A DNA stretch of 64,000 bases, from positions 62,001 to 126,000 of IMG/VR virus record IMGVR_UViG_3300010885_076238; one strand, 5' to 3'. The position numbers were made by a program, and so were the translations under genes. Below are positions 3,317 through 46,521 of this stretch, in pieces. Under the pieces are notes generated by a model that had not been told where the DNA came from, searched no databases, and saw only the letters and a program-made list of their open reading frames with translations. The first letter of the stretch is position 1; the number at the start of each line of letters is the position of its first letter.

Positions 3317-4591
3317 ATGTTTGAAAAGTTATCTGATCTTGTTCAAGACTTGAAGGCCACTTCATCTTCAAATTCTAAAGTTTCAATTATTAGAGATTAT
3401 TTAAAAGAAGACAAAGACCTTCAAAATATTTTTTATTATGTCTATCATCCCTTTTATCAATTTTATGTTTCAAGTGATAACTGTAAGAAAAATAAAGAAT
3501 TAAAAAATAAGCAGCATGACTGTATTTTTAAATTGTTAGATGATCTTAGAAATAGAAAAATCACTGGTCACGATGCTGTTAGTGCCATTAATGGGTATTT
3601 AGAAAATCATGATCACGTTTCGCTTGTTCATGATATCTTGGACAAAGATTTAAAAATTAGAGCTGCCGATAAATTAATTAATAAAGCAATCCCCGGATTG
3701 ATCCCGGAATTTGAGGTTGCTTTAGCTGAGAAATACACACCGGAAATTATGAATCTCAATGAAGATTGGTATGCGAGTCATAAGCTCGACGGTTGCCGCT
3801 GTGTTTGTGTAGTCGATGATTCTGGTGTGGTGAGCATCTCAAGGCAGGGGAAAATTTTTACAACCTTGGGCTTGGTTGAAGATGCCATTAAAAACTTAAA
3901 CATTAAAAATGTTGTTTTTGACGGAGAGATTTGTCTACTTGATGAAAACGGAAAAGAAAGCTTTCAAGGAATAATGAAGCTTATTCGCAAGAAAGATCAT
4001 GTTATTCAAAACCCTGTTTATAAAATTTTTGATTTGCTAACTACAGGAGAATTTTATAATAAGAAAAGTGAAAGAAAACTATCTGATCGACTTGAATTTC
4101 TCAAGAGTGTTATCAAGGAAGATTCAAATCCTTGTTTGACTGTTTTAGAGCAAATTAAAATTAAAAATAACGAGCATTTTGAAGAGTTAACAAAGAAAGC
4201 AACAGATAGTGGGTGGGAAGGACTAATTCTCAGAAAAGACACAGGATACGCAGGAAAGAGGAGCAAGGATTTATTGAAGTATAAAAACTTCTTTGATGCT
4301 GAGTATGTTGTTGAAGACCTTGAATTCGGCCCGTTCAGATATGTTTTTGAAAACAAGGAAAAAGAAGAGATTATGCTTAGTTGTGCAACAATCAAGCATA
4401 AAGACAATGTCGTGAGAGTGGGCAGCGGCTTTACAATTGATCAAAGAAAGCATTATTACAAAAATCCTCAGGATCTTTTGGGAAAAACAATCAATGTTCA
4501 GTATTTTGAAGAAACCTTCAATCAAGAAGGAGGAATAAGTCTCAGGTTTCCTGTTGTTAAACACATTTATGAAAATGGTAGGGATACATAA
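3317..4591 (+). CDS. lig: ATP-dependent DNA ligase
   Basis: HKLDGCRC (I), FDGEI (III), KIFD (IIIa), WEGLILRK (IV), LLKYK (V), OB-fold VGSGFT and SLRFPV. Confidence 0.95.
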   Translation: MFEKLSDLVQDLKATSSSNSKVSIIRDYLKEDKDLQNIFYYVYHPFYQFYVSSDNCKKNKELKNKQHDCIFKLLDDLRNRKITGHDAVSAINGYLENHDHVSLVHDILDKDLKIRAADKLINKAIPGLIPEFEVALAEKYTPEIMNLNEDWYASHKLDGCRCVCVVDDSGVVSISRQGKIFTTLGLVEDAIKNLNIKNVVFDGEICLLDENGKESFQGIMKLIRKKDHVIQNPVYKIFDLLTTGEFYNKKSERKLSDRLEFLKSVIKEDSNPCLTVLEQIKIKNNEHFEELTKKATDSGWEGLILRKDTGYAGKRSKDLLKYKNFFDAEYVVEDLEFGPFRYVFENKEKEEIMLSCATIKHKDNVVRVGSGFTIDQRKHYYKNPQDLLGKTINVQYFEETFNQEGGISLRFPVVKHIYENGRDT

Positions 4592-11172: not shown

Positions 11173-12729
11173 ATGATAAACGATATTAGTTCAAATTACG
11201 AAGCTCTTTGCAAGTTATTTGACTTCACTAAAAAGAGCCGTGCAAGCGGCGTTAAAAAGACTCGCATTATTGTAAAACAAAAACTTTCCTATGAAGATTG
11301 CAAAAAAGAAGTTATTAGTTTGGGAATTGAAGGTGAAAAACAATATAGAAAAAAGAGAAATGAATTAAAAAAACATAATTGGCCTGCTTTGCCGTATGTT
11401 TTTTATAAAGAGTGGATAGATTGGGATAACTTTTGTGGAACTAAAAAAATAGAAATATTAAATTGGAATGATTTCTTATCCAGCTTCAGAGAAGAATGTC
11501 GCAATAATAAAATAAACAGTCGCAATTATCGTGAATTTAGGAAAGAAAATTGGCCTAAAGACCCACGTTCGTATTATCGTGAATGGTCAGGATGGGATTA
11601 TTTATGTGGCGGCGTTGTAGTTGAGCCATATCGTTGCAAAGACATTTCTTTTGAAGATCTAAAAGAAGAAGTAAAGAATTGTAATGTCACTTCTTTCCCA
11701 GAATATAGAAAATGCTATAAAAATCACAATTGGCCTGCTTCTCCTCGTTCTATGTACGAGAACGAATGGGTTTCTTTCAATCATTTTTTCGGAAAAGAAA
11801 AGAAATTTTTGTCTTATGAAGATTTAGTAGTAGAAGTTAGAAAAGCTGAGATCAGTAGTATGACTCAGTATCACGAATACAGAATAAAAAATAATAAAAA
11901 ATCATGGAACTCTACTCCTCATAAATTTGCAGAGTGGACTAATAATTTTGATTTCTTCGGAAAAGATAAAGATCATTGGGCTAAAAAAGGTATTTCTTCT
12001 TATAAAGATGCAAAGACTCTTGAGCAGCTTGTCAAGGAGATTAGAGACAATGGGGTAAAAACCAGAAAAGAGTATAGGAAAAATTGTAAAAAATTAGGAT
12101 GGCCTGCTAATCCCGATGATGCCTACAAGGATTGTTGGAAGGGATGGGATTTCCTATTTAGCAGGGAAGAAAAAGTTGAATTGTCTTGGAACGAATTTGT
12201 CGCACAAGTTAGAGACGCAAAAATCAAGGGATTTTGGGACTATAGAAATAGATATAAAAACTATAAAGGCTGGGTCTCTCATCCTATGAAAAAATACGCT
12301 GAAGATTGGACAACTTGGATGGACTTGCTTGGCGAGCATTTTTCTAAAAAAAACTCAGAAAACGAACATAAAAACAAAATTTCTTGGGAAGAACTCAAGA
12401 GACAAGTTAGAGCCGTAGAAATAGAAACGCAACTAGAATACAGAACGAGATATAAAGAGTATGGATGGACTTCAAGCCCAGAAAAAAGCTATCCAGATAA
12501 CTGGAATGGCTGGGATGATTTTATTGGAAAAAGACAAATTACTTTTTCTCAACTGAAAGAAGAAGTCAAATTAAATAATATAAAAGGACAGGTAGAATAT
12601 AGAAAAAGACACAAAGAATTTGATGGCTGGCCTTCTGCTCCTGAACGTGTTTTTGAAAATGAATGGAAAGATTGGTTTGACTTTTTGAGCAAGCCAAGAG
12701 ATAAGTATCACCAAGAGGCTCAAAGATGA
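11173..12729 (+). CDS. 'integrase-repeat'-type tandem repeat protein (no integrase domain)
   Basis: About 9 units of ExxxxVxxxxIxSxxEY...WPxxPxxxYxxxWxGWxxF; N-terminal YEALCKLFDFT. Confidence 0.75.
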   Translation: MINDISSNYEALCKLFDFTKKSRASGVKKTRIIVKQKLSYEDCKKEVISLGIEGEKQYRKKRNELKKHNWPALPYVFYKEWIDWDNFCGTKKIEILNWNDFLSSFREECRNNKINSRNYREFRKENWPKDPRSYYREWSGWDYLCGGVVVEPYRCKDISFEDLKEEVKNCNVTSFPEYRKCYKNHNWPASPRSMYENEWVSFNHFFGKEKKFLSYEDLVVEVRKAEISSMTQYHEYRIKNNKKSWNSTPHKFAEWTNNFDFFGKDKDHWAKKGISSYKDAKTLEQLVKEIRDNGVKTRKEYRKNCKKLGWPANPDDAYKDCWKGWDFLFSREEKVELSWNEFVAQVRDAKIKGFWDYRNRYKNYKGWVSHPMKKYAEDWTTWMDLLGEHFSKKNSENEHKNKISWEELKRQVRAVEIETQLEYRTRYKEYGWTSSPEKSYPDNWNGWDDFIGKRQITFSQLKEEVKLNNIKGQVEYRKRHKEFDGWPSAPERVFENEWKDWFDFLSKPRDKYHQEAQR

Positions 12730-13796
12730 TAAACAATATTAGTTCAAATTATAAAGCTCTTTGCGAACTGTTTAATTTCAGCAAAAAAAGCTATAGTCGC
12801 CCGAAGAGCCGAAGACTCCGCGTAGTGGAATTTTTATTATTTGAAGAATGCAAAAAAGAAGTTAGACAACAAGGGATAAAAAGTTCGACTGAATACAAAA
12901 AGCTCTATGCTAAAAGAAGCTGGCCGTCTGATCCTACGAAATACTATAAAGAACAATGGAAAGGTTGGCATGACTTTTTGGATAAAGAATGTTTGATTTC
13001 TTTTGAAGAACTTAAAAAAGAGGTTGCTTTAAAAGACATCCAGTCTTCTAGTCAATATCAAAAAACTTTCAAAAGTAACAAATGGCCTCGTCAACCATTT
13101 GTTACTTTTGAAAAAGATTGGAAAGGCTGGGATGATTTTTTTGGTAGAGCCAAAAAACTTTCATACGAAGAAATTAAAAAACAATTGAGATTAAAGGGTG
13201 TTATTTCTATGCCCCAATACAAAAAAGTATATAAAAATAATGGATGGCCCTCCAATCCAAACTCGTTTTATAAAAAAGAATGGAAAGGTTGTTATGATTT
13301 TTTCAATACGAAGAAGCCAAAATTTATTTCGTTTGCACAACTAAAAAAAATATTAAAATTTGAGCATGTTGATTCTTGGATTAAGTATAATAAAATATAT
13401 AAAAAAAGAAATTGGCCATCATCTCCGCGAGATTCTTATAAAAGAGAATGGAAAGGAGGGCATGACTTTTTTGGAAATACAGAGCCGACAAAGTTTCCTT
13501 CTTTCGAAGAAATAAAAAAAGAAATGAAAAAAGAAAAAATTAAATTTTGGAGTCAATATAAAAAACTATACAAAGAAAAGGGCTGGCCTTCTAGGCCACA
13601 AGATTATTACAAAGAGTGGAAAAATTGGCGTGGAAAAAAATTTCCTTCTTTTAACGAGTTTAAAGAAAAAATAAAAATAGAGGGCATTGAAATTTTTTCG
13701 AATCAATATAAAAAATTATACAAAAAAAGAGGATGGCCTTCTAACCCAAATAAATTTTATGAAAAAGAGTGGAAGAAAGGTTTGTTTAAAAAATGA
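12726..13796 (+). CDS. 'integrase-repeat'-type tandem repeat protein
   Basis: Six units with WPSxPxxxYKxxWKG; N-terminal YKALCELFNFS; ATGA overlap with previous gene. Confidence 0.75.
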   Translation: MINNISSNYKALCELFNFSKKSYSRPKSRRLRVVEFLLFEECKKEVRQQGIKSSTEYKKLYAKRSWPSDPTKYYKEQWKGWHDFLDKECLISFEELKKEVALKDIQSSSQYQKTFKSNKWPRQPFVTFEKDWKGWDDFFGRAKKLSYEEIKKQLRLKGVISMPQYKKVYKNNGWPSNPNSFYKKEWKGCYDFFNTKKPKFISFAQLKKILKFEHVDSWIKYNKIYKKRNWPSSPRDSYKREWKGGHDFFGNTEPTKFPSFEEIKKEMKKEKIKFWSQYKKLYKEKGWPSRPQDYYKEWKNWRGKKFPSFNEFKEKIKIEGIEIFSNQYKKLYKKRGWPSNPNKFYEKEWKKGLFKK

Positions 13797-19255: not shown

Positions 19256-19394
19256 TGGCAGTGGCGGCTCACTGATAAATGAATTAAAAGGAAAAATTAC
19301 AAATTGGGTAAGCACAGAAGTGCCCAATGCAATCAATAATTCAATTGAAAATTCAGAAATAACAAAAAGTATGAAAATTTCTGCCGAGTTTGAA

Positions 19395-19419
19395 AATAAT
19401 AAAAAATAAAGCTCGTTAT
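19395..19419 (+). promoter_or_regulatory. phage promoter motif, leaderless class
   Basis: AATAAT-N13-CGTTAT, 6 nt, then ATG 19426; no SD. Confidence 0.75.
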
Positions 19420-19425
19420 AGCCTT

Positions 19426-20466
19426 ATGAAGCTATTTATTGAAACTCTTGAAGCACGAACCGTTTTGTCTGTAGTGTTTTTTGATAAAGAAACCAAAGCA
19501 GCGGTGGCAAATGCTTATAAAGACAAAATTATTTCAAGAGATGAGCTTGTTTCTATTTTTAGGCAGACCACCGATCAGAACACAATCACCGCCAATGAAC
19601 TATCAGATTTGAGAAAAGTTACGACGTTGAGAATGCCAGAGCATGTTCGATACTTGGCTAAAGATGTCGTTTTTGCGAATATTGCAAATGCAAAGTTTCA
19701 AGGCAATACTTTGGGCAACTTGACGGCAAATTCTCCCGCTCAAAAGATTAATAATCTTATAGATAAATGGTTTTATGGAAAAGACCGTCCAGCCTTGCCT
19801 AACAATCTATCATATAAAGAAAGCAAATTGCCTTTATTCGACAATGGAGCGACAAGCACGGATGTTATTCAAGGTCAACTTGGAGATTGTTATTTATTGG
19901 CATCATTAGCCTCTGTTGCAGATAAATTAGGCATAAGAACTTCGTTTATCGACAATGGCGACAGAACATGGACGATTAGGCTTTATGATTTGAATGGCAT
20001 ACGCAAGGTGGATTATATCACCGTTGACAGTTACCTTCCGGTTGATGCGAATGGGTCATCCATTTATGCAAATTTTGATAAAGAATTATGGGTTGCACTA
20101 ATCGAAAAAGCATATGCACAATATAATGAAACGGGTGGCACATGGCATTTAGAAAAGTCAAATAGTTATCAAGCAATAGTGGGTGGCTATCCTGTTCTTG
20201 CACTAGAAAGCATAACGGGAGTGCCTACTAAATGTAATTTTTTCTCTGATGCTATGGCTCAAACAACATTGAACAAATCACTTTATCGCGGCGATGCTGT
20301 TGTTTTATCTGCCCCAGTTAAAGATAAAGATGTTTCTCATTCTTATTATGTAAAATCCTATTTAAATGGCTTGTATTATTTGTATAATCCTTGGGGCTTT
20401 AGTCATTTAGAAGTTACTTGGGATCAATTGAAAACAAACATAAACTTTGTTATAGAGGCAAAATGA
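19426..20466 (+). CDS. calpain-like (peptidase C2) cysteine protease with planctomycete-type LExRxVLS N-terminal motif
   Basis: QGQLGDCYLLA (Cys), LWVALIEKAYA, SHSY (His), YNPWG (Asn); N-terminus MKLFIETLEARTVLS. Confidence 0.88.
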   Translation: MKLFIETLEARTVLSVVFFDKETKAAVANAYKDKIISRDELVSIFRQTTDQNTITANELSDLRKVTTLRMPEHVRYLAKDVVFANIANAKFQGNTLGNLTANSPAQKINNLIDKWFYGKDRPALPNNLSYKESKLPLFDNGATSTDVIQGQLGDCYLLASLASVADKLGIRTSFIDNGDRTWTIRLYDLNGIRKVDYITVDSYLPVDANGSSIYANFDKELWVALIEKAYAQYNETGGTWHLEKSNSYQAIVGGYPVLALESITGVPTKCNFFSDAMAQTTLNKSLYRGDAVVLSAPVKDKDVSHSYYVKSYLNGLYYLYNPWGFSHLEVTWDQLKTNINFVIEAK

Positions 20467-20822
20467 CTCCTTTTTTAGCTTATCAAAAAATCGTTCTTGC
20501 AATGAACAACCTTCATGACAAAAGCGATAAATTCGCCAAAAGAATAAATAAAAAATCGAAAAAGTATAAATATTTTCGCATTCCAGAGTACGAAAAGTTT
20601 TTAATAAATGACGTTAAATTTTCTTATTATTATGCTAGGGATGTGGTGCATGGAAAATTGCCAGAGGACATGCACAATTTAATGCTTTGTGAAGCATTAG
20701 CTAATTCAAATAACGCTTATGTTAAAAACTATTTTGAAATTTGTAAAGGAAATTTTCCAATCACGAATCAAAATCTTGGCTTGAACTCATTGAAAATGGA
20801 AAGACAACTTTATGGAACATAA
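20463..20822 (+). CDS. short LP-HN-M family protein
   Basis: YYARDVVHGKLPEDMHNLML. Confidence 0.75.
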   Translation: MTPFLAYQKIVLAMNNLHDKSDKFAKRINKKSKKYKYFRIPEYEKFLINDVKFSYYYARDVVHGKLPEDMHNLMLCEALANSNNAYVKNYFEICKGNFPITNQNLGLNSLKMERQLYGT

Positions 20823-30049: not shown

Positions 30050-32536
30050 TTATTTTTTACTAACTTGATAGCACCAAAATTTAATTGTTTTATCATTATT
30101 ATAGCCAACCTTCACACAACTCTTAATTTGTTTAATTTTTGATAAAATCTTTGCGAATTGTGGTTGGTATTTAAAAGAACCTTCTAAATTCATAACAAAT
30201 TCTAATATAACAAAAACTAAAGACTTAATTTCTGAAAATTCTTTTGTCTGTCTCCAGTGTGGGTTTAGATCAAATCTATTACTTAGCTTCACATCTACTG
30301 ATTCTAAATTAATCATAGTTTGAATAAAGCTATCAATTACATCATTTATTTCTCTAGATTTGTATGTAGCATCCATATTATTATCATAAGAAATAACTCT
30401 AAATTTTCTTTGCATTTCTCCAAGAATTCTTACAAATCTTTTGCCGATATTGGCAACACCTGTTTGGGACTTTGAAATTCCTTCTTTTGTAGAACCGATT
30501 TTGCTAAAATCTATTTTAGAATAATCGCCATCAAAAAGTCCAGAACTTATCAATTGATCACTTAATAAGATTGCTTTATTAATTTGAATCTTTAGTTCTT
30601 CTGTAATAATGCCTGGGCCGGTCATGCTTAGTATATAATTAAGATTGGTTCCGATGTAACGAACTTTATCTTTATTGAATATTCCCTTTGTAATAAGAGC
30701 TTGATATTCATCTTCGCTTATTTTTTTGGCTTCTCTCACAAGAGAAGAACATAAAACAAAAAAGTTATTGAGCACTCTTTCAATTTTACCCATTCCATAA
30801 TATTTCACATTGCCTAATTCAGTCTGAACTTTGCTAAGATTACGCTCCAATCCCATAAACCATTTTTCTTTAGGAGTGGCATCTAGTCCAAAACGGATTT
30901 CGTCTTTTTTTTGTTTATCATAATAGTCATTGTCACACTCGCCAATTTGATTAATAATAATTGTAGAAATTAATTCGATATTTTTTGTGCTAAAAAATAC
31001 TCCCTGAGTTGGCTCTGAGGGATATATTGATCCTGTATCGTGCGAGTCTAAAAGACCATCAATCCCTAGTTTTCTTAGTAGTCCCGTCCACATTGCCCAA
31101 GGGCGATATTTTTTTTGATTACGTTCGGGCTTTTCTTTTTCCCCTCTGTTTGAACCTATGTAGCCTTTTTTTGCTATTATCATATCTGATATTTTTTTTG
31201 TGATCACATAAAGAAATTTACCGGAAACGTCCTGCTTCCCAGATGATCTCAGACTGATTAGAGACTTCATTAAAGCTTGATTCCAATCTATATCATTTTT
31301 TTCACAAAAATCTTGTAGTTCTTTGCCAAATGGAACTTTTATGGATTCTGATATTTCTTTTTTTCTTTTTGCTATTTCAACTTCAAAATTACCAATTTTT
31401 TTTACCCAATAATCTAATAATTTTTTTACTTTTTTATTTGATAATAAGAAATAACTTTCAATGTAAGTATTGAAATTAGGGCTTGCATCAATATCTCTAA
31501 AATAAGATCCTAAATTAACATAAGATCTCAGACTTTTTGAAATTTTAGTTAATTCTTCTAAAGAAATTTTATCATTTCCAAGCATTTCGAGCATTTTGCG
31601 ATCATTTTCTCTTGAAATGCCCCCAGTACCGCTAGAAAAAGGCTCGGTTTTTATCATTTTATTTGCAAAATTTCTAACCTCGTCAGACAATGCAAAAGAA
31701 TTATTGTCTAAATTAGTGAATAAAGGTAGTTTTTGCGAAGAACCGGGCCATGGCGATAAACTAGAAATCAAATTATCAAGACCAAAATTAATCATCATTC
31801 TTGTTGCGTTGAAAGTCAATTCAGAAATTATTCTTTCAAAATTTTCTTTCGATGAAAGTTTTTCAATTCTATCAACAGAATATTTTTTAATTGATTTTTC
31901 TTCTTCTGAGTAGTCGTCCATCTCGCTCTTAGCAGTTGATACTGTGTTATGATAGAAATTATAAACAATATCATCGCTATACAATTCTGCTCCGCTTTTT
32001 AATAATTCCTCTTTTATTGTTTTTTTTAATAATTTAATTTTTAAATTTTCATGCTTGTAAATATAGTTGCTTATTTGTTGTTTTATGGTTTTGTTTATTT
32101 CATCAACATCGGAAATTTCTTTTATTTCTCCTTCTCCTGGCTTCATAGAAATATAACTTTCTTTATTTTTAATTTTAAAAATGTGAAGATACTTTCTGCT
32201 TCCGGCCATAGGAACGCCTGAGACATTCTTTTTAATAATATACTCAAGAGGAAAAGCATATAATCCTAAAGGAGTTCCACCATCGTCAGCAGAATATTTT
32301 GGCCCAAGTCTTTGAACACAAGAAAAATTACCCCATATGTCTTCGGGCTTAGTGTTATTGTTCACAGCTTTTTCAAAGACAGTCTTTATTTGTTTGATTT
32401 TTTCAAACTTTCTGTAAGGTTTTCCTGTTTGAGGATCGGCTATAGATGGATCAACTCTGCCCACGGCTCTTGAAAGGAGTTGTGGTTCTTCTATCAAATA
32501 TGTGTCTATTGGTTGAAAATATTCTTTAAAATTCAT
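30050..32536 (-). CDS. large putative internal head protein with split ART-like domain (paralogue of 34149-36446)
   Basis: MNFKEY...LIEE N-peptide; TPLGLYAFP and LGIDG..D...IYPSEPTQGVFF blocks shared with the paralogue. Confidence 0.6.
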   Translation of the reverse strand: MNFKEYFQPIDTYLIEEPQLLSRAVGRVDPSIADPQTGKPYRKFEKIKQIKTVFEKAVNNNTKPEDIWGNFSCVQRLGPKYSADDGGTPLGLYAFPLEYIIKKNVSGVPMAGSRKYLHIFKIKNKESYISMKPGEGEIKEISDVDEINKTIKQQISNYIYKHENLKIKLLKKTIKEELLKSGAELYSDDIVYNFYHNTVSTAKSEMDDYSEEEKSIKKYSVDRIEKLSSKENFERIISELTFNATRMMINFGLDNLISSLSPWPGSSQKLPLFTNLDNNSFALSDEVRNFANKMIKTEPFSSGTGGISRENDRKMLEMLGNDKISLEELTKISKSLRSYVNLGSYFRDIDASPNFNTYIESYFLLSNKKVKKLLDYWVKKIGNFEVEIAKRKKEISESIKVPFGKELQDFCEKNDIDWNQALMKSLISLRSSGKQDVSGKFLYVITKKISDMIIAKKGYIGSNRGEKEKPERNQKKYRPWAMWTGLLRKLGIDGLLDSHDTGSIYPSEPTQGVFFSTKNIELISTIIINQIGECDNDYYDKQKKDEIRFGLDATPKEKWFMGLERNLSKVQTELGNVKYYGMGKIERVLNNFFVLCSSLVREAKKISEDEYQALITKGIFNKDKVRYIGTNLNYILSMTGPGIITEELKIQINKAILLSDQLISSGLFDGDYSKIDFSKIGSTKEGISKSQTGVANIGKRFVRILGEMQRKFRVISYDNNMDATYKSREINDVIDSFIQTMINLESVDVKLSNRFDLNPHWRQTKEFSEIKSLVFVILEFVMNLEGSFKYQPQFAKILSKIKQIKSCVKVGYNNDKTIKFWCYQVSKK

Positions 32537-33701: not shown

Positions 33702-34152
33702 GGTTCTATTTTTGCACGGGATGTTTGGTCAAAATAGTTCCAAGCCTTATTTTATAAGATCTTTAGGATTAGAGGTTTTTCATCCATTTTTGAATGATTG
33801 GAGCTTTGAAGATTCTATCAAAGAAGCCCAAAAACATCTAAATGAAACAGAGCCAGACCTAATCGTAGGTTCTTCAAGAGGCGGTGCGGTTGCGATGAAC
33901 ATTGATTCAAAAAATATACCAATTATTTTATTGGCTCCTGCTTGGAGGTTTTTTGGCAAGAAAGATCGAACCAAAGATAATGCAACTATAATTCATAGCG
34001 AAAATGACAACTTGATTCCGATTAGTGATAGCATAAAATTATCAGCAAATTCAAATTGCAAATTGGTAATTGCAGGAAAAGACCATAGACTAAATTGCGA
34101 AGATGGCAAAAATGCAATCAAAAAAATAATTAATACATATTTGAACTGCTAA
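33694..34152 (+). CDS. small alpha/beta hydrolase
   Basis: FLHG, GSSRGG nucleophile elbow, IHSEND, DHRL. Confidence 0.85.
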   Translation: MSKVLFLHGMFGQNSSKPYFIRSLGLEVFHPFLNDWSFEDSIKEAQKHLNETEPDLIVGSSRGGAVAMNIDSKNIPIILLAPAWRFFGKKDRTKDNATIIHSENDNLIPISDSIKLSANSNCKLVIAGKDHRLNCEDGKNAIKKIINTYLNC

Positions 34153-36446
34153 AGTATATCGGGGTCAAACATTTTAGAGCCATCTGGGTTAAGCGGCTCA
34201 GAGTCCTCGCTTGGCTTTCTAGGTGGTTTTGGCTTCTTATGCTGCGGATGCGTAGTCATTCTAAGTTGAGATGGCTTCAAAAACTCTGCGTTTTGGGGAA
34301 TATCGGGAGTGTATGGAAACATTCCAATCTTTATCAAATATCCAATAACATAAGAATGGTGTTCTATAATCTTTCTTAATTGCTCAAGACTCAACCCAGA
34401 AGAATTGGTTTGCAATTCATCAGCTTGAACGGTTCCAGATATTGGCTCGACTAGGTTCCCTTTATTATCATAAGAATAGCCATCCCCATAACGATCACAA
34501 AACATTATCAAATATCTATCAGAATCGACTTTTTCTAAAACTTTCCCGTAGTCATAATTTTGAAATGGCTTTATGAGCCTTACGACCGCTCCAATTTTTG
34601 GAATTAATAATTTTTCTATATTTGTCTTATTGGCAAGTAAAGTTGAAGACACTCTCTTAATTTCTTGTTCTATTGCATTTTTTAAATCTTGATCACTATC
34701 GGGATTATCTCTTTGTTTCATGAATGAATCAAATAAAATTTGAAATTTTGTTAAAAGTTTCATTGAGCTTAATGGCGATTCTCCTTCATATCTAATACTA
34801 TCTCGATAATTTCCAACAAGCTCTGAAAATCCTTTTTTGATTCCTTTAAGAAATCTATTTGCAGGCGTATCTTCAATATCCCAATCTAAAGGTTCTCCTG
34901 ATTTTCTTTTTTGATTTCTTGTTTGTTTTGGATGCTGCCAACTTTGTGAAAGATCTCTTGGGTTAAATTTATTATTTTGTAAGACTTTCAAAAGTTTAAA
35001 TTGCCTTGGATTAAAAAATGCTCCCTGAGTCGGCTCTCCACTGTGAATAGTGGATGTTCCTTCTGTATCTATTACTCCATCGATTCCCAATTCCCTTAAT
35101 ATTTTTGTCCACAATGCCCATTGTCTAATTGAACTATCGTCTTTATCAGTAACTTCTTGAGACATTATTTTTGTTATTTGATAAACGAAAGCCCCAGAAA
35201 TTGTGCTTAGTCCCCGTCGAGACATTTCTTCAACAGTTGTTGCTAAAACTTCCAGCCAATCAATTTTGTACTTATCACAGAGTTGTTTGATCTTATGATC
35301 AAGGGGGAAGTGAATATCTTTTAAATATTTGCCTTTTTGTGAATTAAATTCATCAAGACTTTTTTCTAGTGACTTTTTGATTTTTTTAGAAATCATTAAA
35401 GCCTTATCAAAAATTTCTGGATTTTTGAGAAATTCTGTTTGGGTTGCCATTTTACTGCGATCTTCGATGTAAGGCGTTCCTATTCTAATATTACCATCCG
35501 CCCCAGAAAAATTCGCTAGACTCATTATTTTATCGATATTAAAATTAAAAAATGATTCTTCTTCGTTTTCTTCATTCCAATTCAAACCATATAATTTTAT
35601 TAAGCTTTGCTTGTCTTCATCACCTGCACTTTTTATTATTTGTATTGCTCCACTAGACAAATAAATTCTAAGCTTTTCTTCATCTAACTTGCCAATGTTC
35701 ACAAATTGAGTTGGGCCATTGCTGGATCCATATCTTTTAATTATCATGTTATCCACAAATTTTTTAATTTCTTTTAATATTTCTGATTTTTCTGGAATGT
35801 CTAAAAGTTTTAATTTTTCTTTTATGCCAAAATAGCCACCTTGCAAACTATCATAATAAACATTTGAATGTAAATCGCCCAATGAATCTTCTATTAGCTC
35901 AAGAATTACTGGGGCATTTCTAAGATTAGATCGCACGAACTTTTTAAGAAAATCAATTTTTTTTGAAAAAACTTTTTTGAAATTTTTGCTAAGAAAATCT
36001 TTCTCTTCTCTTATATTTTTACGAATAGACTCTAAATTAGAAACTTCCATTTGCCCTCTTTTCATAGAAACTACATTATCACTAACCATCTCAAATATAA
36101 GAATGTATTTTCTACTGTATCCATAAGGGACTCTTAATCCGTTTTCTAAAACGTAATTTATAGGATAAGCATAAAGGCCCAAAGGGGTTTGTCCGTTTTT
36201 TGCGTTATAATAAATACCCAATCTTTGATAATCACTAAAACTAGCCCAAATTTTATCTTTAGGAACCTTTAGTTTGCTTACTATATTTTCTAGTTCTTTC
36301 TTTTTATTATTAGCTCTCCAAGGCTTGCCGGTTTCTGGCTCTACGAGCGAACTGTCTACGTCACCAATTCTTTTTTTAACTATGGCTTCAACGATTGTTT
36401 CAAAATAACTTGCGTCATATGTTGTGTAATATTCTTTGAAATTCAT
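34149..36446 (-). CDS. large putative internal head protein with split ART-like domain (paralogue of 30050-32536)
   Basis: MNFKEY...IVEA; TPLGLYAYP; LGIDGVIDT...IHSGEPTQGAFF. Confidence 0.6.
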   Translation of the reverse strand: MNFKEYYTTYDASYFETIVEAIVKKRIGDVDSSLVEPETGKPWRANNKKKELENIVSKLKVPKDKIWASFSDYQRLGIYYNAKNGQTPLGLYAYPINYVLENGLRVPYGYSRKYILIFEMVSDNVVSMKRGQMEVSNLESIRKNIREEKDFLSKNFKKVFSKKIDFLKKFVRSNLRNAPVILELIEDSLGDLHSNVYYDSLQGGYFGIKEKLKLLDIPEKSEILKEIKKFVDNMIIKRYGSSNGPTQFVNIGKLDEEKLRIYLSSGAIQIIKSAGDEDKQSLIKLYGLNWNEENEEESFFNFNIDKIMSLANFSGADGNIRIGTPYIEDRSKMATQTEFLKNPEIFDKALMISKKIKKSLEKSLDEFNSQKGKYLKDIHFPLDHKIKQLCDKYKIDWLEVLATTVEEMSRRGLSTISGAFVYQITKIMSQEVTDKDDSSIRQWALWTKILRELGIDGVIDTEGTSTIHSGEPTQGAFFNPRQFKLLKVLQNNKFNPRDLSQSWQHPKQTRNQKRKSGEPLDWDIEDTPANRFLKGIKKGFSELVGNYRDSIRYEGESPLSSMKLLTKFQILFDSFMKQRDNPDSDQDLKNAIEQEIKRVSSTLLANKTNIEKLLIPKIGAVVRLIKPFQNYDYGKVLEKVDSDRYLIMFCDRYGDGYSYDNKGNLVEPISGTVQADELQTNSSGLSLEQLRKIIEHHSYVIGYLIKIGMFPYTPDIPQNAEFLKPSQLRMTTHPQHKKPKPPRKPSEDSEPLNPDGSKMFDPDIL

Positions 36447-45432: not shown

Positions 45433-46521
45433 ATGCCTAATACAATTACGCCAATCGAAGCAGCAAGCCTTTACTTCAAAGAAGGCTCAAGTGATAAAGT
45501 TTACAATGCTACCTTGGAAAAAGAGGATGACAACAAATATGTTGTTAATTTCTCTTACGGCAGACGAGGAAGTGCATTGAAGTCTGGATCCAAAACCTCA
45601 AGCCCCGTTTCTCTTAAGGAAGCCAAGACCATCTTTGACAAAATTGTCAGAGAGAAAACTTCTAAGGGCTATAAATACGTCACCGACGCTGTTGCTAAAG
45701 AAATTCATGTTGCCGACAACCCACCGGACACGCCTACTGAGTCCAAGTGCGTTTTGCTCAATCCAATCAGCGAAGAAGAACTTGAAAAGTATTTGAACGA
45801 TCCAGATTGGATTGCCCAACAGAAAATTGATGGAGTTAGATTTATGCTCCATAAGGTAAAAGATAAAATTACTGCGTATAACCGTCGCGGACTTTACGCA
45901 AACATTCCAACCGATCTTTATAATTTCGCAAAAAACACTCAAGAAGATTTTCTAGTTGATGGAGAATTGATTGGAGATGTTTTTCACACCTTCGATATTC
46001 TTGAATATAACGGCAAAGACCTTACTCAAAACTCAGTTGTCGAAAGGCTTGAGGTTTTGTTGAATTGGGTTAATAATAATCCGTGCGAACTTGTAAAGTA
46101 TACAGAAACTCAAAGTTCAAGCAAAATTGAATTTTATGATCGTCTTGTTCGTGAAAACCAAGAAGGAATTGTTTTCAAACATAAAGACGCAAAGTATTAT
46201 GCTGGTAGGCCCGCCAGCGGTGGAAAGTATGTAAAATATAAGTTTTACAGCACTTGTAGTTGTGTCGTGACTGATGTGAATAATAAAAGAAGCGTAAGTA
46301 TAGGCTTGCTCAATGGCAAAAAATTAGTTGATGCTGGGAATGTTACTATTCCTATCAATTTTGAAATTCCTAATAAGGATGACATTGTGGAAGTCAGATA
46401 CCTTTATGCAAGAAAGCAGTCTGGCTCTCTTTATCAGCCTGTGTATCTTGGCAAAAGAACCGATATTGTTAGAGAAGATTGCAAGCAAAGTCAACTGAAG
46501 TATAAATTTGATGATGAATAA
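45433..46521 (+). CDS. WGR-domain + ATP-dependent DNA ligase
   Basis: WGR: SSDKVY...YGRRG...EKTSKGY; ligase: QKIDG, DGEL, FDIL, EGIVFK, KYKF; OB fold VEVRY, LYQPVY. Confidence 0.85.
   Translation: MPNTITPIEAASLYFKEGSSDKVYNATLEKEDDNKYVVNFSYGRRGSALKSGSKTSSPVSLKEAKTIFDKIVREKTSKGYKYVTDAVAKEIHVADNPPDTPTESKCVLLNPISEEELEKYLNDPDWIAQQKIDGVRFMLHKVKDKITAYNRRGLYANIPTDLYNFAKNTQEDFLVDGELIGDVFHTFDILEYNGKDLTQNSVVERLEVLLNWVNNNPCELVKYTETQSSSKIEFYDRLVRENQEGIVFKHKDAKYYAGRPASGGKYVKYKFYSTCSCVVTDVNNKRSVSIGLLNGKKLVDAGNVTIPINFEIPNKDDIVEVRYLYARKQSGSLYQPVYLGKRTDIVREDCKQSQLKYKFDDE

Follow-up and report, generated by a model that had tools for sequence, protein, structure and literature searches.

The 64,000-nucleotide stretch of DNA analysed here (the window) is taken from a linear IMG/VR virus record of 204,311 bp with an estimated completeness of 88 %, of which it comprises bases 62001-126000, and it carries on its plus strand a gene for a calpain-like cysteine protease that begins with an N-terminal motif of the LEPR-XLL/Planc_extracel type. 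The phage to which the window belongs is an uncultured freshwater phage with a guanine-plus-cytosine (GC) content of 34.7 %, and it carries PHROG matches of the tail-fibre and baseplate type, helicases and two ATP-dependent DNA ligases. Three studies contribute the six DNA sequencing runs in which the window region was found, the two best of these runs being labelled freshwater metagenomes; INPHARED holds no record that resembles the phage by DNA and none that resembles the protease by protein. In what follows, G000 denotes the coordinate frame of the whole phage, P numbers denote proteins (the window protease being P0001) and L numbers denote loci or contigs.

The protease gene occupies positions 19426-20466 of the window, from an ATG at 19426 to a TGA at 20464-20466, and encodes a protein of 346 amino acids that begins MKLFIETLEARTVLS; the same ATG was chosen by independent gene callers on three other assemblies. 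The Pfam family PF00648 (Peptidase_C2) matches residues 136-288 with 64.2 bits against a cut-off of 23.8 (E 1.4e-17), and a search of PDB sequences with the family profile retrieves calpains at E 1e-22, aligning the QG-x-x-G-D-C, H-A/S-Y and N-P-W-G blocks with Cys105, His262 and Asn286 of m-calpain. The corresponding catalytic residues are Cys155 (TGT, 19888-19890), His305 (CAT, 20338-20340) and Asn321 in the N-P-W-G block (AAT, 20386-20388), which are invariant in the phage clade described below, together with Q149, the oxyanion glutamine, and W323, the tryptophan of N-P-W-G. In an AlphaFold2 model built from 40 homologues (predicted local distance difference test score, pLDDT, 91; predicted template modelling score 0.90), the protease core with its PC1 and PC2 subdomains (residues 72-346, positions 19639-20463) superposes on the cores of calpain-1 and calpain-3, with a VIA-align Z score of 22.5 and a root-mean-square deviation of 2.4 Å over 215 residues to 1zcm and 1kxr, the next fold class, phytochelatin synthase, reaching only Z 11, and Foldseek matches the model to calpain cores at E 2.7e-15. 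By profile, fold and catalytic residues, P0001 is thus a member of family C2 and a predicted protease. It has no PHROG match, NCBIfam yielded nothing useful for it, and no calpain was found in PHROGs, in INPHARED or among the phage models of BFVD.

Outside the classical calpain core lies a three-helix N-terminal extension (residues 21-71, positions 19486-19638), whose helices at 21-30, 38-47 and 56-65 are modelled with pLDDT above 90. The start of structural alignments to calpain cores mostly falls within residues 72-77; alignments to a few full-length calpain chains extend back to 55-58. The extension is kept in the bacterial and phage subfamily, and its residues D33, R38, D50, E58 and L62 are invariant in the phage clade.

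The N-terminal motif, referred to here as the tag, spans residues 1-16 (positions 19426-19473) and has the layout I5-E6-x-L8-E9-x-R11-x-V13-L14-S15. When compared with the consensus L-x-x-E-x-L-E-x-R-x-L-L-A, as quoted in PMC8567305, residues 3-15 of P0001 match at L3, E6, L8, E9, R11, L14 and S15, the criterion applied being that the consensus should lie inside about the first 35 residues. When the 803 six-frame open reading frames (ORFs) of the 204-kb phage are searched with a regular expression of the motif, a single match is obtained, the shuffled expectation being 0.34 matches anywhere and about 0.02 at an N-terminus. A custom hidden Markov model (HMM) trained solely on the N-termini of 21 cellular homologues likewise recognizes P0001 as its sole match among 1193 phage ORFs (E 0.0035, 13.5 bits, with 4.7 bits for the runner-up), and neither the regular expression nor the custom HMM detects any further tagged protein in the phage. 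Within the phage clade, E6 and E9 do not vary, L8 and V16 hardly do, and R/K at position 11 and positions 14-15 are conserved. The model shows residues 1-20 as disordered (block means of pLDDT 52 and 67, with values below 50 at residues 11-14), and the motif is followed by a short hydrophobic stretch, T12-F19, at which the cellular homologues show Ala/Leu/Ser-rich stretches. Judged by position, consensus and homology, the tag of P0001 is of the Planc_extracel/LEPR-XLL kind and is a real motif, not a chance one. An earlier note on this DNA had described a calpain-like protease with an intact Cys/His/Asn set, a helical domain before the catalytic part and a planctomycete-type N-terminal motif, and these observations are confirmed: Pfam, fold and triad alignment agree on the first, the model helices bear out the second, and the regular expression, the custom HMM and conservation in all relatives with a readable N-terminus uphold the third. 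The interpretation that the note first attached to them is partly supported, as discussed below.

A word search yielded 130 homologues of P0001. The nine closest full-length ones are proteins of 344-399 amino acids, 39-86 % identical to P0001, and all nine carry [FI]-E-x-[LI]-E-x-[RK]-x-x-[LMC]-[AS] inside the first 9-30 residues. IMG/VR contributed three more copies, with the motif present in both that have a readable N-terminus (L097, L098). When these two viral contigs, P0028 and the cluster member P0126 are added to the nine, the tag is kept in 13 of 13 relatives, among proteins that are 36-55 % identical, and 11 of the 13 lie in phage-like or viral contigs; the pattern over the thirteen widens to [FI]-E-x-[LIF]-E-x-[RK]-x-x-[LMC]-[AS], P0028 having the variant A-E-x-L-E. 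In a maximum-likelihood tree of 142 sequences, nine or, by another count, ten short phage-type homologues including P0001 form one clade (Shimodaira–Hasegawa-like approximate likelihood-ratio support 97), and P0028, from a jumbo phage that bears rII, is its sister (support 94). P0008, on a 1.6-kb contig, and P0007, whose own contig was not read, were placed in the phage-type set without context. The contigs of relatives that can be read are phage-like, with dense small ORFs on the same strand, few Pfam matches and 29-34 % GC, and they carry genes for an HNH endonuclease, SpoU methylase, RNase H and DNA ligase, as well as T4 rIIB on one contig of 112 kb. The phage encoding P0003 (55 % identical) has WGR ligase, MYG1-like and L5-gp82-like genes in common with the window. 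Comparison of these sequences places the protease in a clade that several low-GC phage lineages carry and indicates that the tag is probably under selection across them.

A scan of GTDB species-representative genomes returned more than 530 cellular relatives, and among the best 80 loci 44 belong to Planctomycetota and 33 to Cyanobacteriota (heterocystous or other). The planctomycete homologues examined have 440-1455 amino acids, in which a basic stretch followed by the motif forms the extreme N-terminus and the calpain module lies towards the C-terminus; the tag is present wherever their N-termini were read, and every tagged calpain homologue with an organism name is from Planctomycetota in the sets examined. 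The cyanobacterial homologues are without the tag and begin with a PPC domain. Throughout the cellular family, the partner domains (PPC, dockerin, RTX repeats, LRR_5/FN3 and WXG100) are all domains of secreted or surface proteins. Tag and protease are separated by 100-1100 residues in cells and are directly fused in phages, so that the phage version looks like a cellular protein cut down to tag and enzyme and comes close to a natural deletion experiment. That the tag survived this reduction in every lineage is the strongest argument that it is needed.

Two clade members were found outside evident phage contexts, both in JGI sample 3300059473. P0014, on a contig of 6648 bp, has 399 amino acids and an extended basic stretch at its N-terminus, and it shares 87 % identity with P0009, a phage protein; its flanking genes are two of the N_methyl+SBP_bac_10 type and two of the GYF_2 type, and the contig looks like planctomycete chromosome, the N_methyl+SBP_bac_10 family being massively expanded in Planctomycetales (PMC8567305). 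P0123, on a contig of 8568 bp, has 1496 amino acids, with the N-terminus Y-T-L-E-P-R-H-M-L-T-A, LRR_5 and FN3 repeats and a C-terminal autotransporter-associated part, and its neighbours are a PF07638 extracytoplasmic function sigma factor and a Ser/Thr kinase. Residues 751-1127 of P0123 are an in-frame calpain module of the phage type that shares 91 % identity with P0007. The latter belongs to the phage-type clade, and its cluster mate P0126, which is nearly identical to it and 88 % identical to P0123, occurs in phage-like contigs. The calpain module of P0123 is a compositional island, with a combined F/Y/M/I/N/K fraction of 0.31 against 0.18-0.23 in its flanks. The contexts of P0014 and P0123 point to recent exchange between such phages and Planctomycetota.

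Upstream of the protease gene lies a copy of a promoter-like motif that recurs through the phage and consists of an A/T box, A-A-A-A-T-A-A-T (AAAATAAT), about 13 nucleotides and the hexamer (T)CGTTAT. At this gene, the box is read from the sequence at 19393-19400 and the -10-like CGTTAT hexamer at 19414-19419, six nucleotides before the ATG. Among 49 strict sites, the box lies at -21 to -14 from the hexamer and is 84-98 % conserved at six of its eight positions, with 80 % and 65 % at the ends; the k-mers TCGTTAT and CGTTATA are enriched 13-15-fold in the 40 nucleotides upstream of ORF starts. By eye, roughly 100 listed copies lie on the plus strand, from about 55 kb to about 166 kb of the phage (G000), and those in the window include copies at 2988, 6276, 11148, 19414, 22432, 23291, 25534, 28349, 33314, 40171, 41410, 45410, 53560, 54459, 55810, 56593, 57290, 57936 and 62872. 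An ATG follows the hexamer by 4-6 nucleotides at 21 of the 49 strict sites, where about three would be expected by a rough composition estimate, and 15 of these open ORFs of at least 40 amino acids; the distance of six found at the protease gene is the commonest value among the motif sites. The upstream gene ends 16 nucleotides before the protease ATG, and this gap holds no Shine-Dalgarno-like or purine-rich sequence. A scan for sigma-70 promoters and terminators around the gene gave nothing above shuffled expectation.

Box, hexamer, six-nucleotide spacing and the missing Shine-Dalgarno sequence together make a leaderless transcript a reasonable reading, and the protease transcript probably starts at or beside the ATG. 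The earlier note had described the gene as expressed leaderless from the phage promoter; the sequence pattern bears this out, and the start itself is deduced from that pattern. The motif suggests a phage-specific sigma factor or RNA polymerase. Copies of this class precede the ligase region and several tRNA genes, and no full box-plus-hexamer copy was seen in the tail-fibre/baseplate-like block at the left end; motif class and gene block would place expression of the protease in the early or middle phase. The related phage contigs L002, L008, L010, L011, L093 and L094 do not have the motif, and homologues in other phages have Shine-Dalgarno-like leaders instead. Across the phage, the motif occurs in two forms, a leaderless one with the ATG 4-6 nucleotides downstream and one with a Shine-Dalgarno sequence. 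A palindromic element of about 20 nucleotides, with a consensus of about GGCCGCGATTGAGACGGCC, is present outside the window in 11 plus-strand copies (G000 148580, 148898, 156681, 157377, 157816, 158878, 159198, 160769, 163712, 164839 and 165288); wherever the flanks of a copy were read, the element immediately follows the promoter hexamer and often begins with ATG, and it may form a 5'-end hairpin of a set of transcripts or of small RNAs.

Downstream, a plus-strand gene for 119 amino acids (20463-20822) has an ATG that overlaps the protease stop codon (ATGA) and no Pfam match. It was considered as a conserved partner or inhibitor of the protease and rejected, since it is unrelated to the 62-amino-acid and 68-amino-acid downstream genes of other phage lineages. 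The lineage of phages with P0006, P0007 and P0009 has a conserved gene of 68-69 amino acids with the start M-L-W-G-E, which in every case overlaps the calpain gene at its 3' end (L008 6918-7127, L011 5656-5862, L094 11154-11360 and, in L097, just downstream of 3221); it has no homologue in the window phage or in L002 and could encode a lineage-specific partner or inhibitor. Elsewhere in the window, the two ATP-dependent DNA ligases of this one phage lie on the plus strand at 3317-4591 and 45433-46521, the second having an N-terminal WGR domain and weak similarity to an mRNA-capping enzyme; the calpain gene of the related phage L002 directly follows the WGR ligase gene. The neighbouring plus-strand ORFs 11173-12729 (518 amino acids) and 12726-13796 (356 amino acids) each give a borderline Pfam match to INT_rpt, an integrase repeat unit, and no PHROG match. 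Two large minus-strand ORFs, 30050-32536 (828 amino acids) and 34149-36446 (765 amino acids), interrupt a block that is otherwise on the plus strand and match nothing in Pfam or PHROG; the JGI gene call lists adh_short for the equivalent stretch of L005, which was not reproduced here.

The closest known counterparts of P0001 are the tagged calpain surface proteins of Planctomycetota (loci L013-L092 of Pirellula, Planctomycetaceae and Gemmataceae, with P0040 and P0044), which share its helical extension and core at 36-42 % identity over about 320 residues and have the same L-E-x-L-E-x-R-x-L-L-A type of motif in the first 35 residues. They differ in their length of 440-1455 amino acids, in the Arg/Lys-rich stretch before the motif, in genomes of 52-59 % GC and in the 100-1100 residues of beta-rich, immunoglobulin-like, LRR or FN3 domains between tag and protease, whereas the phage protein consists of tag and enzyme only, is encoded at 32 % GC and shows drift from R to K in the motif of some phage lineages. 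The cyanobacterial PPC-calpains of Calothrix, Fischerella, Scytonema and Nostoc (P0024, L017 and others) contain the same helical-plus-calpain module at 34-40 % identity and group with the phage clade in the tree with weak support (80), but they have an N-terminal PPC (PF04151) pre-peptidase domain in place of a LEPR-type tag. With the cores of eukaryotic calpain-1, -2, -3 and -9 (1zcm, 1kxr, 6bjd, 1kfu), P0001 shares the two-subdomain papain-like core at 21-27 % identity, the Cys-His-Asn triad, the oxyanion glutamine and the N-P-W-G block with its tryptophan; in contrast to these cytosolic enzymes, it is predicted to be extracytoplasmic, is without C2-like or penta-EF-hand domains and has the additional three-helix extension.

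Among viruses, the sole other protein of this fold in BFVD is a putative calpain-family thiol protease of Aureococcus anophagefferens virus (A0A076FI00; Foldseek E 1.5e-10, template modelling score 0.50), which belongs to a giant virus of a eukaryotic alga, is 17 % identical and is without a LEPR-type tag. By function, a possible analogy is offered by Llp of phage T5 and Imm and Sp of phage T4, phage proteins that are sent early to the envelope by a host sorting signal and alter the cell surface; these are lipoproteins or membrane proteins that act by binding and use Sec or Lol signals, and they have no sequence or fold relationship to P0001. No paper linking the LEPR-XLL/Planc_extracel motif to phages was found in the literature searched.

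The best overall explanation of these observations, which we regard as having an even chance of being right, is that a tagged phage protease is exported via the host's tag route and cuts surface proteins. The tag-plus-calpain cassette would have originated from the tagged, multi-domain, extracellular calpain proteins of Planctomycetota, and the phage's own promoter motif would start transcription at the ATG or beside it and so yield a leaderless mRNA. The tag would then take the protease out of the cytoplasm by whatever route the host's own tagged surface proteins follow, export by the tag being a proposition on which the chances are about equally balanced, and the exported protease would cut envelope or surface proteins. 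Because the gene lies in a promoter class and block with replication genes and tRNAs, not with tail genes, its role would be an early or middle one, in which surface proteins, receptors or adhesins might be removed or shed, leading to superinfection exclusion or stopping progeny from sticking to infected cells. Such a surface-remodelling role is itself rather doubtful, and it is favoured over a role in lysis. In its widest form, the proposal is that the cassette moves between low-GC jumbo phages and Planctomycetota chromosomes and that phages deliver the protease to the surface via the host's LEPR-type route soon after infection; in that form it is put forward as a tentative possibility, with the balance of probability against it.

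The earlier note had likewise proposed that the phage routes a protease through a host-specific secretion pathway, perhaps to clip receptors or the proteinaceous envelope. A borrowed host sorting tag is the best reading of the motif, as the custom HMM and the conservation across relatives both recognize it; the term host-specific goes further than the data allow, since LEPR-XLL tags are also found on proteobacterial RTX proteins. Receptor clipping by the phage protease is speculation, and the premise of a proteinaceous envelope is dated, Planctomycetes having been shown to have peptidoglycan.

A number of results weigh against export into a planctomycete envelope. PF07595, a 20-position model, gives residues 2-16 of P0001 12.2 bits against a cut-off of 25.5 (E 0.16), and the NCBIfam LEPR-XLL model (NF012209) does not match P0001. 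The earlier note had stated that its interpretation would be refuted if the motif were not recognized by the HMM or if the protein stayed cytoplasmic, and, taken literally, the first half of this is what the curated models returned. The planctomycete homologues P0037, P0040 and P0044 also fall below the PF07595 cut-off, with 12.3, 14.9 and 20.5 bits at the same N-terminal position, and since genuine planctomycete homologues fail as well, the cut-off is too strict for this subfamily. Of the Arg/Lys-rich stretch before the motif (the RR of R-R-L-x-x-E), P0001 has only K2; the residues before the motif include one to three Lys/Arg in other phage-clade members and several Arg/Lys in cellular homologues. 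Indirect support for envelope localization by the tag comes from Tuwongella, in which 20 of 52 tagged proteins were detected, eight of them solely in the sodium dodecyl sulphate-soluble envelope fraction, where tagged proteins were enriched (PMC8567305). LEPR-XLL tags also head giant RTX proteins of Proteobacteria, in Vibrio and Limnohabitans (PMC10868602, PMC9611531), and some tagged calpain homologues have C-terminal RTX repeats, so the tag may serve in retention or processing rather than in export. With respect to the leaderless transcript, no RNA run was among the runs found to contain the window region.

The remaining contrary points concern the host. The phage and all related phage contigs measured have 29-37 % GC as against 52-59 % at the planctomycete homologue loci. 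The phage carries 14 tRNA genes, at G000 37568-187063, five of which are clustered on the minus strand at 186672-187063, and 12 of the 14 serve codons that end in A or U (Lys-TTT, Arg-TCT, Glu-TTC, Ile-TAT, Gln-TTG, Gly-TCC, Thr-TGT, Pro-TGG, Ala-TGC and others). Such a set is usual in phages with more AT than their hosts, and it thus softens the GC objection to a planctomycete host without removing it. Among 401 sampled Planctomycetota genomes, the only gene resembling P0014 was the already known 41 %-identical one, which is not evidence of absence. Neither of the planctomycete hallmark families PF07596 and PF07963 has a match in the phage, a control search with PF07596 being likewise without a match, which leaves the PF07596 negative uninformative. 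P0123 could be an assembly chimera instead of a real phage-to-host insertion. Nothing relevant was found in the literature on planctomycete phages, and phages of Planctomycetota are mentioned merely in passing in a 2025 review. Overall, a planctomycetotal host is given a slight preference.

Two alternatives accept the protease as a phage gene and differ on what the tag does. It may be a leftover of a captured cellular gene, the protease remaining in the cytoplasm and cutting host or phage proteins for takeover or processing; this agrees with the unsatisfied curated HMMs, with the position of the gene among early/middle, replication-type genes and with the lack of a classical Sec signal, only about eight uncharged residues (12-19) following the motif and no A-x-A site being present. 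Decay would be expected of a relic, whereas E6 and E9 do not vary at all and L8, R/K11 and positions 14-15 are conserved between proteins that are 36-55 % identical elsewhere, and all cellular partner domains of the module are extracellular, which makes a relic unlikely. Alternatively, the N-terminus may be an ordinary Sec-type signal peptide with an unusual charged lead, in which case export would be generic and the host might be any didermic bacterium, such as a member of a low-GC freshwater lineage. The hydrophobic stretch T12-F19, matched by Ala/Leu/Ser-rich residues in cellular homologues, would fit such a signal, LEPR-XLL tags are known outside Planctomycetes, and 35 % GC suits many freshwater bacteria better than known planctomycetes. 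On the other hand, two glutamates within the leading and hydrophobic regions are atypical for Sec, the organism-named tagged calpain homologues are all from Planctomycetota while the cyanobacterial clade is untagged, and two clade members sit in planctomycete-type chromosomal contexts, so that a generic Sec signal is likewise improbable.

Two further alternatives deny the tag or the gene its place in an export route. Proteases are frequent in large phages, and another ORF of this phage (G000 1231-3810) matches a PHROG annotated as protease together with structural families, which might suggest a role for P0001 in the virion or in morphogenesis, as a prohead protease or as an internal protein that is ejected, its N-terminal motif then being unrelated to export. 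Its gene, in contrast, lies far from the tail/baseplate block and has a promoter class common to ligase, helicase and tRNA genes, the protein is without any PHROG match, and its relatives are cellular extracellular proteins, not capsid-maturation proteases; a virion role is accordingly rated as very improbable. The closest named relatives being cellular, the gene might also be cellular contamination or a mis-assembly in a viral contig. This can be regarded as negligible: the identical gene and its neighbours were assembled independently in the JGI metagenome and in two Logan runs, the gene occurs in the six DNA runs of three studies, its local GC of 32 % equals that of the phage, whose own promoter motif is present, and a 55 %-identical copy lies in a related phage beside the same ligase, MYG1-like and L5-gp82-like genes.

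In planctomycetes, the LEPR-XLL/Planc_extracel motif heads dozens of giant surface proteins per genome. The enzyme family and the kind of tag were already known; what is new here is the carrier, a phage, and the architecture, a tag fused to an enzyme. With 346 amino acids, the combination of tag and assayable enzyme is the smallest natural cargo found here and could be used to probe the signal and to seek the machinery that reads it. If the protein is exported, a calpain-type protease would represent a new kind of phage activity at the host surface, and the cassette ties several uncultured freshwater phage lineages to Planctomycetota, which provides a lead to their hosts. Should the proposed movement and delivery of the cassette hold true, P0001 would be the first phage effector known on a LEPR-type route and a natural minimal reporter for the tag-reading machinery, and the motif would then serve as a marker for assigning a set of uncultured phages to a host phylum from which hardly any phages are known.

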